A stretch of 63,475 nt of DNA, counting the filler, from Bigelowiella natans CCMP2755 (lineage: Eukaryota > Protista > Cercozoa), in assembly GCA_000320545.1 (NCBI GenBank). It is 5 parts of 5 records of this genome, joined end to end, with 100 filler letters (N's around TTAATTAATTAA, not from the genome) between each part and the next. Parts side by side here need not be neighbours in the genome. Positions count along the whole stretch, not along the records: positions 28,780 to 46,273 come from ADNK01001267.1; 4 more parts are not named here. One strand, written 5' to 3'. Below, in pieces: positions 28,780-37,240 of this stretch. The notes below the pieces were generated by a model. That model made no database searches. It worked only from the letters and a program-made list of their open reading frames with translations, and was not told the DNA's origin. Both the position numbers and the translations under genes were made by a program. The stretch's first letter is position 1, and every line of letters begins with the position of its first letter.

Positions 28780-28919
28780 CGATGTTTCTGTGAAGAACGA
28801 GATTGACGAAGTAGAGGGTGAGCAGCCTCGTGTCTCCAACTCTTATCATCGTGTACAACGTACAGAGATAAATTTGACGACGTACACATCAGCACACATA
28901 TTCACTTTTTGTGTGTTTG

Positions 28920-28978
<59 letters not shown>

Positions 28979-29488
28979 GTGTACTGTGATACTGAATATT
29001 GGAAAGGGGTTGATCAAAAAAGCGATGTTGCTTACTGCGGCTCTAGTCGTAGGCTTAACGATGATGGGTGGCGGTCGGTGTTGTTGTGTTGTGTTGTGTA
29101 CGATACAGGGGCATGTGAGGGCACCTTGGCATGCTCGACGTGCCACATGATCTTCGAACCTGAAGGTAGTAATTTTGCATGCACCCCCACTGATGGATTA
29201 TTTGTGCGCCAAAAGCAATATGAAAATGCCATCCATGCTCTTTACACGTGCGCGCCCCAACCACCACATTTCACATCTCATCGTCCTTCCTCATTTCCCC
29301 GTTGTACTTCCTGCTGCCGCCACCCTGTTTTTGCAGTGTTCGAGACGCTCCCCGCACTTGAAGAAGAGGAGGAGGACATGCTGGATCTAGCAATTGGAGT
29401 CGAGGACACGTCGCGGCTCGGCTGTCAGATCAAAGTAACAGCGGAAATGGACGGGATGGAGATACGGCTTCCTGCAGACGAAAACTAA
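28780..29488 (+). CDS. 2Fe-2S ferredoxin, adrenodoxin/Yah1 type (5'-partial)
   Basis: Spliced: [58 protein letters not shown]...TAA. All four Cys ligands and the EEDMLD and SRLGCQ motifs are present. Confidence 0.93.
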
Positions 29489-30039: not shown

Positions 30040-32124
30040 TCAGTAGCGGAAAGGCCCATGATCATCCTGCACGATGGTGAACGAGTCTGTGACCTTCCCC
30101 CCATTGTTTTGCACGTGCTCGTAGACGAGAGTCGTGGCGTTGTATGCGGTGATGCGGCCATAGGCTCCGCCCGTTCCGTACGCGCGACACCAAGGAGTAG
30201 CTGCGGATGACTTACACTCGTAAGTCAGCGTGCTCTTTCCGGCAACGCCGGGAACGCCGCCATTGCCCTCACAGATGTGCACGGGCCCCAAAGGGCTCAC
30301 ATAGTCCTTTTGCTTCGAGCCGTCAGGCTTGGTGCAGAGCTGCGCGCCCTCCTCCTCTGAGAAGCAGACCGGCCAGTTGGAATTATAATCATGATTGTGC
30401 CCGGCGTCGTACACATCCACGCCGTGCTTCTTGAGCAGCGGCTCCAAGCCCTTGCCTACCTTTGCAAACATCTCCCCCACGGTCTGCTCGCACGGCTGCC
30501 CCTCGCCCCGCGCGAACTGAGCACCGCAGCGCGCAGGGATGAACTCGTGGCCGCTGGTGGCATACCCCTCCGCCTCCTCCCCGATGAAGTAGGCCGCCGA
30601 GGCGTTCGCGTGGCGTGCGGTGCTCTCGTGATGCAGGGGGAAGTGAGAGCTGACGATGACCCAGGGAGTGCGGGAGCGATTCACAGCGGACAAGTCCCGG
30701 TCGAGCCACGCGAGCTGGTGCGCGTCGAGGTTGTTGAGGTCCAGGCCGGCCAGGTGAATGAGGCCGAAGTCTACGGAGAAGTAGCGCGACGTGTTCGACG
30801 GCACGCGGGAGTGGAACCCAGGCCCGAAGAGGGTGGCCTTCGTCAGCAGGTCTCCGAGGGCGCTGGTGGCGGACGACCGCACAGCCGCGCCGCCGTCGCC
30901 CCCCTCCCCGAGCGTCTCCCCCCACGTCATGTTGAGGTAGCGCTCGTAGGAGTCGCCGTCGTTGTGCTCGTGGTTGCCGATGATTGGGATCCATGGGCAT
31001 GCGCTAAGAGTGGGCTGGAAGCTATTCATGTACGCGTCGCCACGACGATCGCCCGCGTTTCCAAGGTCGTACGCGTGGTCTCCCATGTGCACGATGGCCT
31101 CGATGCGGCCATCGACGCAGTCCTCCAGCAGATTTCCCATAGCGTTGTAGCGCGAGTGACCCATGTCGCCGTAGATTCCAATCGATGTGGGCAGTCCCTC
31201 CTGCGCGGCGGAGAGGCTACGAAAGCTGAACGTCTCCGACCACACGGCGCCGGGCGCCCCACTTTTCACTTTGTACTGGTACTTCGTGGAGGGCGTTAGC
31301 GAGGAGAACTTGATGAAGTGGAGAAAGTAGTTGACTCCCTCTGCCTCGCTCAGTTTTTTGTAGAAGTGAGTAATCCCGGTCACCTGGACAAGACTCTCCC
31401 CCTCGACGCCGATCATAGCGAGCGGCGGCTGGGCGGCGGAGGGCTCCTTCTCATCGTGCGTGACGAAGGACACGACCACAGTGTCCTCACTTGCGACTTG
31501 CAGGTTGATCTGCTCCGGGTGGGAGGTAGAGGGAAGGCAGTACTGGGTATGGTTTTGACCCTTTGCTGGTGTGTCGCAGTAGCACCACGGCCCGGCGAAC
31601 GAGTTCGTCACGATATCTGAGAGGGGGGGGATGGAAGGGGGAAGAATAGGCAGAGTATTCAGAATCTAAACGAGATTGTATAAATCTTTCTGACTGAGAA
31701 ACCTAATCCATGCGCAATCACATCGACAAAGAAAGTTCGGTTCATGGCCCCCCCTCCGTTTACATACCTACTGTACAGCCGTCACATTCGAACTCGCCCG
31801 CCGTCCTAGCTGGCATGGCGCAGTTGTTGCCGGCATCAGTAGGAGGCTTACCATCGAACCACATCGCATCGATCTTGTAATTGAGAATGAAAGAAAATCA
31901 TCAGGTATTTGACGGCGAAATGCAAATGAGAGCGTATCACTCGCTCACGAAGACTAATCGATTACCTTTGCCTGGACTGACGGATCAGTTGACACTGCAT
32001 TCCATGGCGCACAGTCTCCCAAACATAATTTTGGGTCGGGAGCGTAGTTTTGCATGATGACATCGTAGACGCTGGCTTCGCATGCTCGAAGGGCGAGGAG
32101 GAGGAGGACATTGAGGAGCACCAT
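30040..32124 (-). CDS. Secreted purple acid phosphatase with Cys-rich, kringle-like N-terminal module
   Basis: Signal peptide MVLLNVLLLLALRACEA; PEQINL FN3-like start; metal-ligand motifs GDMG, GDHAY, GNHE, VSSH and GHNH in order; C-terminal YGRI...DSFTI. Confidence 0.92.
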
Positions 32125-32503
32125 CGTTATCGCCCCCAATTTTCAGACGAAATCGGAACGGATTTTGTCCGAAGTCCTGATCATTTTTCATGAATATTGT
32201 CCAAAAAAATATAGTCGCACTTTGAATTCACCTTGTTTTTTGCGCACTTGGATCCATGCGAGAAACTTGTCATATCTTATGCTTCAAGGGTTTCACTAGG
32301 GTTCGCCGGGGGCATACATCAAAACTCGAGAAATAGAGAGCGTTTCTCACATGCGGCAAGAAAATTACGCATTTTCAGTTTATCACAAATCTCATGTGAT
32401 TCGCACAGGTAAATTATACGAAGTTTTTCGCTTGAATAAAATACTAAAATTATCCTGCAAAACTACACTACCAACGCGAGACGAACACGATCACCTTGGA
32501 GCC

Positions 32504-33603
32504 ATGGGGTCCGATGACCCCTCCGCACGCATTAGGGTCGTGAGGAAGAGGAAAGCGAACAGGCGGTGCTTCGACTGCCGAGCCCGCGCACCTCAGTATC
32601 TCTGTTTGGAGTATGCCACCTTCGTCTGCACGAATTGCGCTGGCGTCCATCGCGGGTGACAATAGAATTTCCTTGCATGTGTGTGTGTGTGTTCCGTAGT
32701 TAGGGTGAGAGGGGGCAGGGAGGTTCACTGAATTGCGTACCCATTTCCATACGGGTGATGTGTTGAAACGTGTCGCCAAAATCGTAGGTTTGGGAGGCGA
32801 GTGAAGTCGATCACAATGTCATCATTCTCGGATAGAGGTAACACCGACGACGATGACGACGACGAAAACGACGACGACGACCCAAAAGCAGAAGGGCCTT
32901 TGGTTGGTGCTACGGTGCATGCTATAGATGCTGTCATTCCTGCTCTAAGTGTTCTCATTATTACCGTATCGCAGAGGCAGATTTGGCAGAAGGCGGGGGG
33001 AACGCTAGAGCTAAGATGGTGTGGCTTGGGAAGTGGAAGAAGGGCAAAACCCCCCCCTCTCTAGGTACGCTGGGCCTCGAAACAAACACTCATTTTTTGT
33101 TTCTTTCGTTATGATTCTTATCAGTACTTCTGCTGTTATCGTCACTAATTACCAAAACTGAGCGAAAAGCGGCCTTCAAACGTCTCTTTCCCCCCCAATT
33201 CTGAAATTTTGATGAGAAATGTCCATGAATGTTAGGAGACGATGAAAGTAGAAGGTCACATATAACCTTGAAGGTAGTAATAGTAGTAGTAGAAGTAGCA
33301 GTAGTCGTAGTAGCAGCAGCAGCAGCAGCACCTTCATACGCAAACACTAATTATTCGCCTGTTTTTCTCCTCCCGCTCCCCCTTATGCTCAGTATGAAGA
33401 AAAGAAATGGTATATCTCACCGGAGGAGGCTGGAGTGCCGCCGGCTAAGATATCAGCTGGAAGACTTGGCTCTGTTCAGAACCTCTTCCAAGTGGATTAT
33501 ATGGAGAAGGAGGGGGCGGCGGGCGGCGGCGGGGACAACGAGAACTCGTACGTTACTGCGCGATTTACATCTCCCAAGCACATTAGGAAAACTTACCGAA
33601 AAA

Positions 33604-33678
<75 letters not shown>

Positions 33679-34060
33679 AACGTGAATATTATACCGTGGT
33701 GATGATGGTGATTAGCATAGCTCTCGAACATCCATGCTTACGATCATCATCCCTCCGCTCTCTCTCTCTGATTGATCATAAATACGGCTACCATGAGCAG
33801 GAATGGAACTTCATCGCCAAGGGGAAGCTCCTCGCTTGTTGATATCAATCTTGACGATATTTTCGCAGCAAGTCCTAGCGCTGCTTCTATTCATGAGGGG
33901 GCGGGAGGAGGAGGAGGAGGAGGAGGAGGAGGAGGAGGAGGAGTGCCTGGTAAGACGGCATGCGCTGTCGCAATTTTCAAGCTGGCGAGACAGATTAACA
34001 CAAAACAGTGCGGATTCCCACCCATTCTTTATAGTCTCTCCTCTATGCTTGATTGATATA

Positions 34061-34092
<32 letters not shown>

Positions 34093-36534
34093 GCTCCTAG
34101 TTGACTTAATTAGTAGCAGCGACGGCAAGACGACGACGGCGAAAAACAAGAAAACTAACGAGAAAAGTGGGGGAAGGGGCTGGGGGTGGGGCGGAGGCCC
34201 CTTTTCCTCCTCTTCTGATAGCCAAAAGGGCGCGAGAGGCTCTCAAGGCGATGCTCTCGGAAAGTAACACCTTTCTCATGACATCAAGTGTCCATAGGAG
34301 GGTGGGGGAGGGGAAGTCTCGAAAAATGGAAATCACTACTTGGCTGTCGCAGGCACTTCTTTCCTTATAGCAGCAGTAGCATTCAAATAAACTGTATGGA
34401 TTGATTTATGAATACCCCCTCCCTTTTTAACCAACCCCCCCCCCCCCCCCGCCCTTCCTCGCAGAAGCTTGGACTGTTTAGATTACCTACTTTCTCAAGG
34501 GGCATGGATGTGGAAGGAGCTGTTTGCTGTTCCGTCACGGTTACACTGAGGAAGGGAGGGGGGTGGGGGGAGAAACGACGTTGAAGACCATTATCCATTC
34601 TCCATCTATCTCTCACGCAGTTCTTCTCCTTCATCGCATTTTTTATATGAATGCATATTATAAAGATATAGAATATATGTGTGTGTGTGTGTGTGTGTGA
34701 CTGTATTTCTTGTGCGACTTTCAATTTTCCCCCTCCTCTGCCCGCCCCCTCCCCCTATCGCAGAGTTGCATTCGCGGTACGAGAATGCTGTGCATCGGAC
34801 CTTAAGCTGGTCGTCGTTATACACGGCCTCTTCGGGTAGCTGTATGCAGATAATAATGATGATGACTAAGATGGTGATGATGATGATGACGATGATGATG
34901 ATGATGACGACGACGGCGATGATGATGACGATGATGGTGATAATGATACTATGAAACCACTGATACCTGCGTCGTAGTAGAGATGTGCCGCAGGGCTGGA
35001 CAATGACTCTTGTGTGTGCGTGTGTTTGTGTTTGTGTTTGTGGGTTTATGCAGGTGGGTGGCGCTCCTGTTGTTTATCCTACGAGACCTAGATTTCTTGC
35101 CACGGTAGAGGGTTGATGGTAGTGTTTGAATGTGATACTGCCTGGTGTATAGTAAATGTATAGCAGGATGTGCAAAATCCATTCCGCAAACTCAACACCC
35201 CCCCCCCCCCCCCCTCCCTTCTCATTTCCCTTTCCTCCCCATTGTACTCTTCCTCGTCTACTACGCGATGGGGCTAGGCGACGGTGGGTGCTGCCGATAT
35301 GTATCCTGCTGGAATCAGTCAACTTCTGGATAGTGGTAAAAACTGTGCGGCTCTAGTTGTTGTTGTTATTGTTAATAGTAGTTGTAATAGTGGTAGTGGT
35401 AGTAGTAGTAGTAAGGAAGAAGGAGAAGAAGAAGAATCACCAGCATTGAGGACGCTCGCAACTCCATAGTCCGAGGAATTAAATCAACCTTTTGGTCTCG
35501 TGGTCGCTGATAGTAGCTCCATAGAAGAAGAAGAGAGGTGTGCGATGAAGGCTCGCAGTTGTTGTCTTAGTTGCCTTCATCGGCTTTGCCCTCCCCCCCG
35601 CCCTCCCTCCCCTCCCCTCTCCCGGTTTTACCCTTCCCCCCCATCGTAGAAAAACGTAACAGGCCCGCGTCTGATCCGAGTTCGGTGGTTTCTTCATGCC
35701 CCACCCCCACCTCCAACCGCGAGATCGCCATCGTCTCCCCAAGCGCAGGGTGAGGGGAAGGCTGGCGCGGCGGGTGGGTCGAAGCAGCTGAACCAGCACT
35801 CCGCAACAGCAAAGGCGGCGGCGGCGGCGGCGGCGACAACGGCCATGAAGAAGAAGAAGATGACGATGGCCGAGATGATGGTGATGAGGAAGAAGCAAGA
35901 AGAGTTGAAGAAGGAGAAGGAGAAGAGCAACAGGCGGCGGAGAGAACAAAAAGAGGAAGGAAAACGCCTGCAGCAGCAGACGGCGACGAAGAAGAACAGG
36001 AACGCTGAAGCGAAAGCGAAATCCTCGCCAAGAACAGCAATAGCTGGTAGCAAAGACCAAAGAGCAACAACGGCAACCGAGAAAGTAGCAGCAGCAGCCC
36101 ACAATGATCCACATCGCAGAAGATCCCCCTCTCGAGCCCTTCCTCCTGTGAAGCTCCCCCCCCCCCCGAAATCGTTGTTCATTGGCGACAGTGAGTGGCG
36201 ATGGGTGGGAACGGCTGCATACCATAGCGGGGGGGGGGGGAGCAACAGCATTCAATGGCTTTTCTGGTTCATTCTATCGTCGCATGTGGGTCTTTGGAGC
36301 TTCATATCGCTCATCGAATTCCTCTCGTCGGGAGGGGGGCGGGGGGGATACGAAACTGACGCTGCTGGCCAGGATGCTATGGCGAGCGGCGATGCCGCCG
36401 CGCTGCGCTGGTTGTGGGTGTCGACGGCTGCTGCCTGCCTTGGGGCGGTCAACCTGGCAAGTTTCTCACGGGCCAATGCGGAGAGGAATAAGCGTCTAGA
36501 GGGCGAGGTCGTCGAGCTGGATCTGCCAATCTGA
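32504..36534 (+). CDS. ArfGAP (AGFG/AGD14-type) - TVP23/ECHIDNA (DUF846) fusion protein, 12 exons, ~645 aa
   Basis: Exons 32504-32655, 32788-32837, 32975-33064, 33236-33273, 33393-33547, 33801-33949, 34101-34263, 34465-34539, 34764-34835, 35054-35104, 35278-35335 and 35650-36534; all GT-AG and phase-compatible (1938 nt). ArfGAP: NRRCFDC..FVCTNCAGVHR..RVKSITM..GGNARA..KYEEKKWY. TVP23: HGLFGWVALLLFIL, NFWIV-KNVTGPRLIRVRWF, LFWFIL..LW, WLWV..LGAVNL. Confidence 0.8.
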
Positions 36535-36579
36535 GAACGTGGCAGCTTCGCTCAGAGTCTACGATTCAACTTCCAGCGT

Positions 36580-36598
36580 TGCGCGTTAGCTAGTTAGT

Positions 36599-36670
<72 letters not shown>

Positions 36671-37240
36671 AAAAATGCACATTCGTGCGATGACCGATGC
36701 AAATCGCATGCGAGCTGTGTAATGGCACGTGTATAGCTACGAAGTGCGTGGCGCATCGGAGAGACATATATACGATGACATATAATCACAGCTCATATAT
36801 CACGATCGCTCTGATCGCCACACGTGCAGCAGCAGATAGCTAATCGAAGATTATGAGGGCCGCATGCAGTACACGTTAGCTGGATTTGACTAAATAGAGT
36901 ACTGATGCTGCCTGGCAGCGCTATCGCGTGCGTAAAATCGTTATGTACATTGCTGCGAACCAGGCGGCTCATTATCGTGGCGCACATGCACGACAGCAGC
37001 TAGCTTAGCCGCACAAAAATAAAGTTGGATGTACACGGAAAACACCTAACACTAGAACACACACGCCCGCGCGCAAAGCAATGGATATATAAGCATGTAC
37101 ACGATGATTGAAGAATTTTTCTTTTGCAGTCAATAACTAAATTCCGCGATGGCAGATCATGCGGTGCATGCACGGGGCCGCAATTCATCATGCCTCGCTA
37201 GGCTCTGTACAGATGTCAGGCAGCAGCGAATGCGAGCATA
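36580..37240. other. RY/CATG/TGCA/CTAG-rich intergenic island 5 (convergent 3' ends)
   Basis: gcatgc, tgca and agctagct words between the fusion gene stop (36534, +) and the stop at 37278 (-). Confidence 0.55.

Follow-up and report, generated by a model that had tools for sequence, protein, structure and literature searches.

The stretch of DNA analysed here, referred to as the window, comprises 63,475 nucleotides of Bigelowiella natans CCMP2755 (GenBank assembly GCA_000320545.1), in which five parts from five records are joined by filler letters. On the plus strand at 32504-36534, in the part that comes from ADNK01001267.1, lies a spliced gene whose predicted product carries an ArfGAP domain at its N-terminus and a TVP23/ECHIDNA-type membrane domain at its C-terminus, two trafficking families that are normally separate proteins and are physically linked here. 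This ArfGAP-TVP23 fusion is very probably real. It is regarded as real and conserved because the mRNA of a protein from another organism (P0001) holds both domains, because the exons run collinear with that protein, and because the exon bridging the two halves (exon 8) is conserved upstream of its own ATG.

Exons and domains of the gene

The gene model, which was rebuilt from the sequence, consists of 12 exons with GT..AG at every border and in-phase joining (Table 1), and the spliced open reading frame (ORF) spans 1932 nt, that is, 643 codons followed by TGA. A preliminary description of the locus had reported twelve in-phase GT-AG exons that form one ORF of about 645 aa; all exons, borders and phases were reproduced and a single ORF was recovered, while the exact length is 643 aa. 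The micro-exon 4 restores the frame, and direct joining of exon 3 to exon 5 would read a stop. When the 340 AG sites in 32000-37000 were ranked by upstream pyrimidine richness, the top five were all acceptors of the model, with the tract of exon 7 being the most pyrimidine-rich and that of exon 8 (34463) the second. Moreover, the exon 7 donor at 34264 (GTAACACC) is identical as an 8-mer to the donor of intron 2, which is supported by the domain it interrupts. Taken together, the acceptor ranks and the shared donor lean towards a splice at the exon 7/8 junction. An in-frame ATG at 32351 (ORF 32351-32659) precedes the start at 32504; the alignment with the N-terminus of P0001 favours 32504, so the ATG at 32351 would lie upstream of the transcription start site or within the 5' untranslated region (UTR).

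Table 1. Exons of the predicted ArfGAP-TVP23 gene and the part of the protein encoded by each (TM, transmembrane helix)
Feature	Position	Strand	Content
Exon 1	32504-32655	+	Start codon and ArfGAP zinc finger with Arg finger (CFDC...CTNCAGVHR, 32567-32653)
Exon 2	32788-32837	+	FGRRVKSITMSSFSDR, AGFG-type RVKSI block; phase consistent
Exon 3	32975-33064	+	ADLAEGGGNARAKMVWLGKWKKGKTPPSL, ArfGAP GN...W block
Exon 4	33236-33273	+	DDESRRSHITLK, 38-nt micro-exon; I..K of the ArfGAP C-terminal helix
Exon 5	33393-33547	+	YEEKKWYISPEE..., end of the ArfGAP domain and first conserved linker motif SVQNLFQVD
Exon 6	33801-33949	+	Linker; conserved acidic motif LVDINLDDIF and (GGA)13 poly-Gly run
Exon 7	34101-34263	+	Low-complexity K/G/S linker; 163-nt open frame in the required phase
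Exon 8	34465-34533	+	Bridge segment SLDCLDYLLSQGAWMWKELFAV; decisive for fusion versus two genes
Exon 9	34764-34835	+	VAFAVRECCASDLKLVVVIHGLF, start of the TVP23-like domain, first half of TM1
Exon 10	35054-35104	+	WVALLLFILRDLDFLP, second half of TM1
Exon 11	35278-35335	+	RRWVLPICILLESVNFWIV, TM2 and first half of the TVP23 signature
Exon 12	35650-36534	+	KNVTGPRLIRVRWF signature, loop insert 35692-36171, FIGDSEWRW, TM3 ~36256-36324, TM4 ~36397-36465, TGA

The exons were compared with profiles and databases singly, exon by exon. Exon 1 alone scored 51.7 bits against Pfam ArfGap (PF01412; cut-off 28.7), and its zinc finger is composed of CFDC, RARAPQYLCLEYATFV (16 residues) and CTNC-AGVH-R, which gives CX2CX16CX2C together with CX2CX4R. 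With RVKSITMSSF in exon 2, GGN..W in exon 3 and LK/YEEKKWY across exons 4 and 5, the whole list of ArfGAP motifs described earlier (C4 finger, catalytic Arg, RVKSI, GGN, KY..K.W) was located in exons 1-5. Exon 1 also matched ArfGAP domains of the PDB with E down to 1e-10, and these matches of exon 1 alone do not separate the subfamilies.

TVP23/ECHIDNA proteins are conserved membrane proteins of the trans-Golgi network (TGN) with clear phenotypes in secretion, glycosylation and auxin-carrier delivery, and to our knowledge no molecular activity has been assigned to them. Their consensus signature, (D/N)FW.VKNV(T/S)G....RW(W), lies where TM2 ends on the cytosolic side. In the window, the corresponding signature NFWIV/KNVTGPRLIRVRWF arises only across the 35335/35650 splice, just as the preliminary description had stated for its FWIV-KNVTG-PRLIRVRWF motif, and the signature of P0001 reads YFWLVKNVTGPRLARVRWY. 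Kyte-Doolittle peaks of P0001 fall at residues 272-290, 297-315, 409-427 and 455-473; in the window, exons 9-11 supply the first two hydrophobic stretches and exon 12 contains two hydrophobic peaks (TM3 and TM4). A check against the Pfam profile DUF846 (PF05832) bore out the domain in P0001, at 47.3 bits over residues 273-338. In the window, exon 12 alone reached 15.7 bits over residues 202-226, below the cut-off of 22.6, and exons 9-11 are too short to scan. The sub-threshold score reflects the splitting of the domain over exons 9-12. Judging from signature, hydropathy and the match in P0001, the C-terminal part is a divergent TVP23/ECHIDNA (DUF846) domain with four predicted transmembrane helices.

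Exon 12 carries, in the TM2-TM3 loop, a lineage-specific insert at 35692-36171 of ~160 aa, which is low-complexity, charged and strongly purine-skewed (AT skew 0.46). The insert is open in several frames on both strands, with minus-strand ORFs of 181-258 aa, and ORF length in this region is therefore uninformative on coding. Among 36 candidate in-frame GT..AG introns within the insert none was convincing, the best being 35881-36153 with the donor GTGATGAG.

A related transcript from another organism

A phmmer search with the C-terminal half of the TVP23 part (36172-36531) against 1.84 billion representative proteins returned exactly one protein, P0001 (496 aa, E 8.6e-10, residues 384-492), and no canonical TVP23 at E<=0.001. 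P0001 is a TransDecoder 'type:complete' ORF of MMETSP Transcript_29030, which is also found as JGI 3300017015 contig Ga0186189_106519; the contig is 1747 nt long, and the ORF at 165-1655 is flanked by UTR at both ends. In addition to DUF846, P0001 matches ArfGap with 97.6 bits (residues 11-117; profile positions 5-114 of 117), and it likewise has an intact zinc finger with the Arg at CX2CX4R. An isoform, P0002, equals P0001 plus a 5-aa insert (EGDFA) in the TM3-TM4 loop, and this might reflect alternative splicing or allelic variation.

In tblastn, exons 1-6, 8, 9, 11 and 12 lie collinear with P0001, and the match reaches from the start Met as far as GE(I/V)V(D/E) at the C-terminus. Exon 1 corresponds to residues 1-50, start included; 28 of 34 aa are identical, and third positions account for 18 of the 24 nucleotide differences. 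Exon 2 corresponds to residues 51-65 in one high-scoring segment pair with exon 1 across the intron, exon 3 to residues 68-94 (54% identity, E 2.7e-5), and exon 4 to residues 96-110. Exon 5, besides its tblastn match, aligns with residues 110-150 at a local score of 47 (shuffles 20.7 +/- 3.9, reached by 0 of 300), and exon 6 aligns with the P0001 linker at 44 (shuffles 23.4 +/- 3.9, reached by 1 of 300). Further downstream, exon 8 matches residues 232-257 (61.5% identity, E 1.7e-6), exon 9 residues 259-277, exon 11 residues 298-315 (56% identity, E 7e-4, with 6/2/14 differences at codon positions 1/2/3), and exon 12 residues 316-356 and 334-492 (E 1.9e-21). Exon 10 aligns locally with residues ~281-290 at a score of 29 (shuffles 16.4 +/- 3.1, reached by 0 of 300), and the spacing from ELF to KNVTG, counted by hand, is 66 residues in both proteins. 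The exon model goes beyond chance because a fusion derived from the mRNA of another organism matches it collinearly and because exon 10 has its own local match.

The ArfGAP domain was assigned to a subfamily mainly with P0001. Against solved ArfGAP structures, P0001 scored 77.4 bits with AGFG1/RIP (2olm), 50.2 with SMAP, and <=40 bits with ArfGAP1/2/3, ACAP, ASAP and GIT. A word search with its ArfGAP half found oomycete proteins of 640-740 aa and plant AGD14 as the nearest, with ArfGap as their sole Pfam domain and no further ArfGap fusion among the matches. The oomycete relatives P0003 and P0006 have long FG/DPF/NPF-rich tails, and P0003 has no similarity to the TVP23 part. As to lineage, this oomycete affinity is at most a hint of a stramenopile. 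By match scores, the ArfGAP domain is of AGFG type, and the assignment in the window goes through exons 2-5, which are collinear with P0001. The earlier typing as AGFG/AGD14, described as a soluble type, agrees with AGFG1 as the best structure match and with nearest relatives that are soluble and lack DUF846.

The linker between the two domains is largely low-complexity, measures roughly 110-150 aa and contains two conserved acidic-hydrophobic motifs. These motifs, SVQ(N/K)LF(Q/D)VD and (I/L)(N/D)LDD(I/L)F, are common to both species (33450-33497 and 33835-33870 in the window; residues 141-150 and 166-173 in P0001) and might serve as short linear motifs that bind adaptors or clathrin; the oomycete AGFG-like proteins terminate in ...NPFDLF.

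No other fusion was found with baits that are specific to the divergent TVP23 subfamily and blind to fusions built on canonical TVP23. A word search with the TVP23 half of P0001 found only P0001 itself, and one with the whole of exon 12 gave no match, its 8000 candidates being taken up by low-complexity words. ESM Atlas searches with the C-terminal half of exon 12 and with P0001 gave no usable match, and metagenome scans with peptide patterns from the alignment and with a degenerate KNVTGPRLxRVRW DNA pattern found no relative. In the searchable literature, judged mostly from the co-occurrence of terms, no description of an ArfGAP-TVP23 fusion was found, and ArfGAP and DUF846 were not found together, in line with the earlier statement that no such fusion had been described.

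Several points weigh against the reading of the locus as a membrane-anchored ArfGAP. The B. natans gene model is a prediction from genomic sequence, and the single independent relative found is itself a de novo transcriptome assembly. Local alignment of exon 7 with the P0001 linker gave no similarity beyond composition, so the case for this exon is made by the best acceptor tract, by 163 nt of open frame and by a length that brings exons 6 and 8 into phase. Since the one window exon of sufficient length to carry a signal stays under the DUF846 threshold, membership in the TVP23 family is established via P0001. Part of the 160-aa insert in exon 12 could be an undetected intron. The AlphaFold2 model of P0001, built on a 3-row alignment, has a mean pLDDT of 33 and a pTM of 0.26 and is unusable. 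Finally, AGFG proteins appear in reviews without demonstrated GAP activity, and catalysis by the fusion protein is not assured.

Even so, the structure given in the preliminary description, one spliced ORF that opens with an AGFG/AGD14-type ArfGAP and closes with a TVP23/DUF846 domain, finds support in both the exon model and the ORF of P0001. As predicted from these two, the arrangement is a new domain architecture made from two known families and kept in at least two organisms.

Proposed mechanism and alternative readings

The N-terminal region and the TM2-TM3 loop of P0001 are both K/R-rich, with an even number of helices between them; the positive-inside rule would thus place the two termini and the ArfGAP domain in the cytosol. 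In this predicted topology, the ArfGAP domain would face the cytosol, the only side on which it could meet Arf-GTP, the TVP23 module would hold it permanently on the late-Golgi/TGN membrane, and the tethered domain might end Arf-GTP signalling locally through its putative activity. Permanent anchoring would thus replace the transient recruitment of soluble ArfGAPs. Alternatively, the domain may serve, on a flexible tether, as an adaptor that binds coat or SNARE partners, as proposed for AGFG proteins. It is plausible, as we infer, that a membrane-anchored ArfGAP couples Arf inactivation to TVP23-dependent TGN traffic. Such coupling would suit the predicted topology, and it is consistent with work in Arabidopsis in which ECHIDNA, ARF1 and the BIG ARF-GEFs were reported to colocalise at the TGN and to require one another for this localisation (Jonsson et al. 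2017, as cited in PMC6827439). In yeast, the interactors of YIPF proteins include Tvp23p and the ArfGAP Gcs1p (PMC6682643).

The alternative that survives best accepts the fusion and takes its ArfGAP-like domain as non-catalytic, namely as a module that binds SNAREs, coat components or adaptors, so that the protein would be a membrane-fixed adaptor. In its favour, the domain falls in the AGFG clade. This clade, which has a poorly defined Arf-related function, is among the six ArfGAP subfamilies that date back to the last eukaryotic common ancestor (PMC6724607). Reviews, including PMC6724607, describe AGFG1 through its binding partners and through clathrin/AP-2/EPS15 vesicles and give no Arf substrate, which keeps the non-catalytic variant a live rival. 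The conserved acidic LF and LDD[IL]F motifs of the linker, which resemble adaptor-binding motifs, also speak for it. However, both species have kept the Arg and an intact zinc finger, as would be expected if catalysis were under selection, although AGFG1 has them too. On balance, a non-catalytic domain is considered rather unlikely.

Two further alternatives concern the junction between exons 7 and 8. It is improbable, though worth stating, that the fusion transcript is accompanied by a shorter stand-alone TVP23 isoform, which would be transcribed from an internal promoter in intron 7 and start at the in-frame ATG of exon 8 at 34508. This ATG lies at a natural distance ahead of TM1, about 20 codons, and transcript diversity is attested in the relative by isoforms, at least two in number (P0001 and P0002). 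Yet the ATG is not conserved, as its Met aligns with a Leu in P0001. Moreover, no stand-alone form of 162-514 aa appeared in the word search, which is weak evidence since low-complexity words swamped the query.

A more radical proposal is that two tandem genes have been joined by a forced-splice artefact, with a soluble ArfGAP ending at TAA 34265-34267 and a stand-alone TVP23 starting from ATG 34508 or from a mini-exon ATG (34278 or 34326) spliced to 34465. Unspliced exon 7 does read G-K-TAA, and the ATG of exon 8 leaves an N-tail of the length typical for TVP23; the stop and the ATG together made this proposal a serious rival, and the lack of conservation in exon 7 adds to it. Nevertheless, a stop after a phase-2 GTAA/GTGA donor is automatic, and the same occurs after exon 1 (HRG-TGA), so the stop alone decides nothing. 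What separates the two readings is the segment of exon 8 upstream of the ATG, which reads SLDCLDYLLSQGA in the window and SLEFLDYLLAKGA in P0001. Nine of the 14 codons before ATG 34508 encode identical residues, and the differences fall 4/2/9 at codon positions 1/2/3; this is, by its third-position bias, the pattern of protein-coding sequence under purifying selection. The frame of exon 8 is closed by TGA 34409-34411, 54 nt upstream of the acceptor, with no in-frame ATG before 34508, and the conserved segment of 13-14 codons is therefore translatable only through a splice from an upstream coding exon. In P0001, the mRNA contains one ORF through this region. Mini first exons starting at ATG 34278 or 34326 can be drawn in phase, but only with GTC donors and with a promoter directly behind the ArfGAP stop, 11-60 nt past it; P0001 gives no support for them, and they were rejected. 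A separate start of the TVP23 part, which the preliminary description had named as an outcome that would overturn its proposal, is disfavoured by the conserved pre-ATG segment, the non-conserved ATG and the single ORF of P0001, and two tandem genes are thus very improbable.

Least probable of all is that the locus is a decaying or unexpressed pseudogene copy of a fusion functional elsewhere: the 160-aa low-complexity insert, several intragenic microsatellites and the absence of the window protein itself from a 15-billion-protein collection would fit, but neither a frameshift nor an internal stop occurs in the 1932 nt, the splice sites of the 11 introns are canonical throughout, the substitutions are distributed as under purifying selection, and an unannotated genome explains the absence equally well. 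Overall, the best explanation, which we consider likely, is one 12-exon gene for a protein of ~643 aa that consists of an AGFG-type ArfGAP, a linker and a TVP23 domain and that would work as a membrane-anchored ArfGAP.

Genomic surroundings and comparison with known systems

Microsatellites are dense in and around the fusion gene (33604-33671, 33904-33943, 34064-34091, 34856-34947 and 36600-36669). Intron 5 holds a compound (AT)n(TG)n, and a mirror (AC)n(AT)n begins 66 nt past the stop codon; an (ATG)31 lies in intron 9, the acceptor tract of exon 7 consists of (CT)14, and the (GGA)13 at 33904-33943 is translated as poly-Gly in exon 6. Compound (TA)n(CA)n repeats recur throughout the whole piece, and an Rfam scan of the whole piece gave no match.

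A purple acid phosphatase gene (Pur_ac_phosph_N, Metallophos and Metallophos_C) occupies 30040-31611 on the minus strand and probably also 31954-32139 on the same strand, head-to-head with the fusion gene. Its likely signal-peptide exon (MVLLNVLLLLALRACEA...) ends ~370 bp from the ATG of the fusion gene, and a gap of this size implies a short shared promoter region. The G+C content at third codon positions is 0.80 in the phosphatase gene versus 0.60 in the fusion gene. Further upstream, an ORF at 28790-29488 on the plus strand contains stretches (ACEGTLACSTCH..., ...RLGCQIKV...) that by eye resemble an adrenodoxin-type 2Fe-2S ferredoxin. A segment with a microsatellite, probably an intron, interrupts them, and the unspliced ORF had no match in Pfam.

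A bolder reading, which is put forward only tentatively, is that the locus encodes the first integral-membrane ArfGAP; the fusion would be conserved and lineage-specific, with its TVP23 module as a built-in membrane receptor for an AGFG-type GAP. Such a protein, known in silico from two protists, would be an unusual ArfGAP, permanently embedded in the membrane instead of being recruited on demand. A conserved fusion is classical Rosetta-stone evidence that TVP23 and AGFG act together. If the bolder reading holds, TVP23/ECHIDNA proteins of other eukaryotes might have the molecular role of organising regulators of Arf at the TGN, AGFG/AGD14-type GAPs among them.

Among known systems, the AGFG subfamily (human AGFG1/HRB/RIP, plant AGD14 and the oomycete proteins; the best database matches are AGD14 and proteins of Phytophthora, Plasmopara and Peronospora) shares the CX2CX16CX2CX4R, RVKSI(S/T)M, IW(L/M)G and KYExK(K/R)WY blocks with the fusion protein. 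The two differ downstream of the ArfGAP domain: AGFG proteins continue into a long, soluble, disordered tail rich in FG, DPF and NPF, whereas the window protein and P0001 lack an FG-repeat or NPF-rich soluble tail and have a short linker followed by a four-helix membrane domain.

With TVP23/FAM18/ECHIDNA, the C-terminal half shares four hydrophobic helices, a W-rich block ahead of TM3 and the signature where TM2 ends. Canonical TVP23 is a stand-alone protein of ~200 aa, while here the domain is C-terminal to an ArfGAP, so that the product is not the small stand-alone late Golgi/TGN protein typical of the family. In addition, the fusion reads GPRLxRVRW(F/Y) in place of the canonical GRxxVGLRWW, and the loop between TM2 and TM3 is longer, by ~50 aa in P0001 and by ~160 aa in the window. 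The closest likeness is to P0001 and P0002 (Transcript_29030 and Transcript_29029), which have the same order of ArfGap, linker with LFxVD and LDDLF, SLxxLDYLL bridge and TVP23-like domain, with blocks that are 39-82% identical to the window protein and about 40-60% identical over most of the aligned length. They differ from it in coming from another organism, in being known only as transcripts, and in their size of 496-501 aa versus ~643 aa, with a shorter linker and a shorter loop insert.

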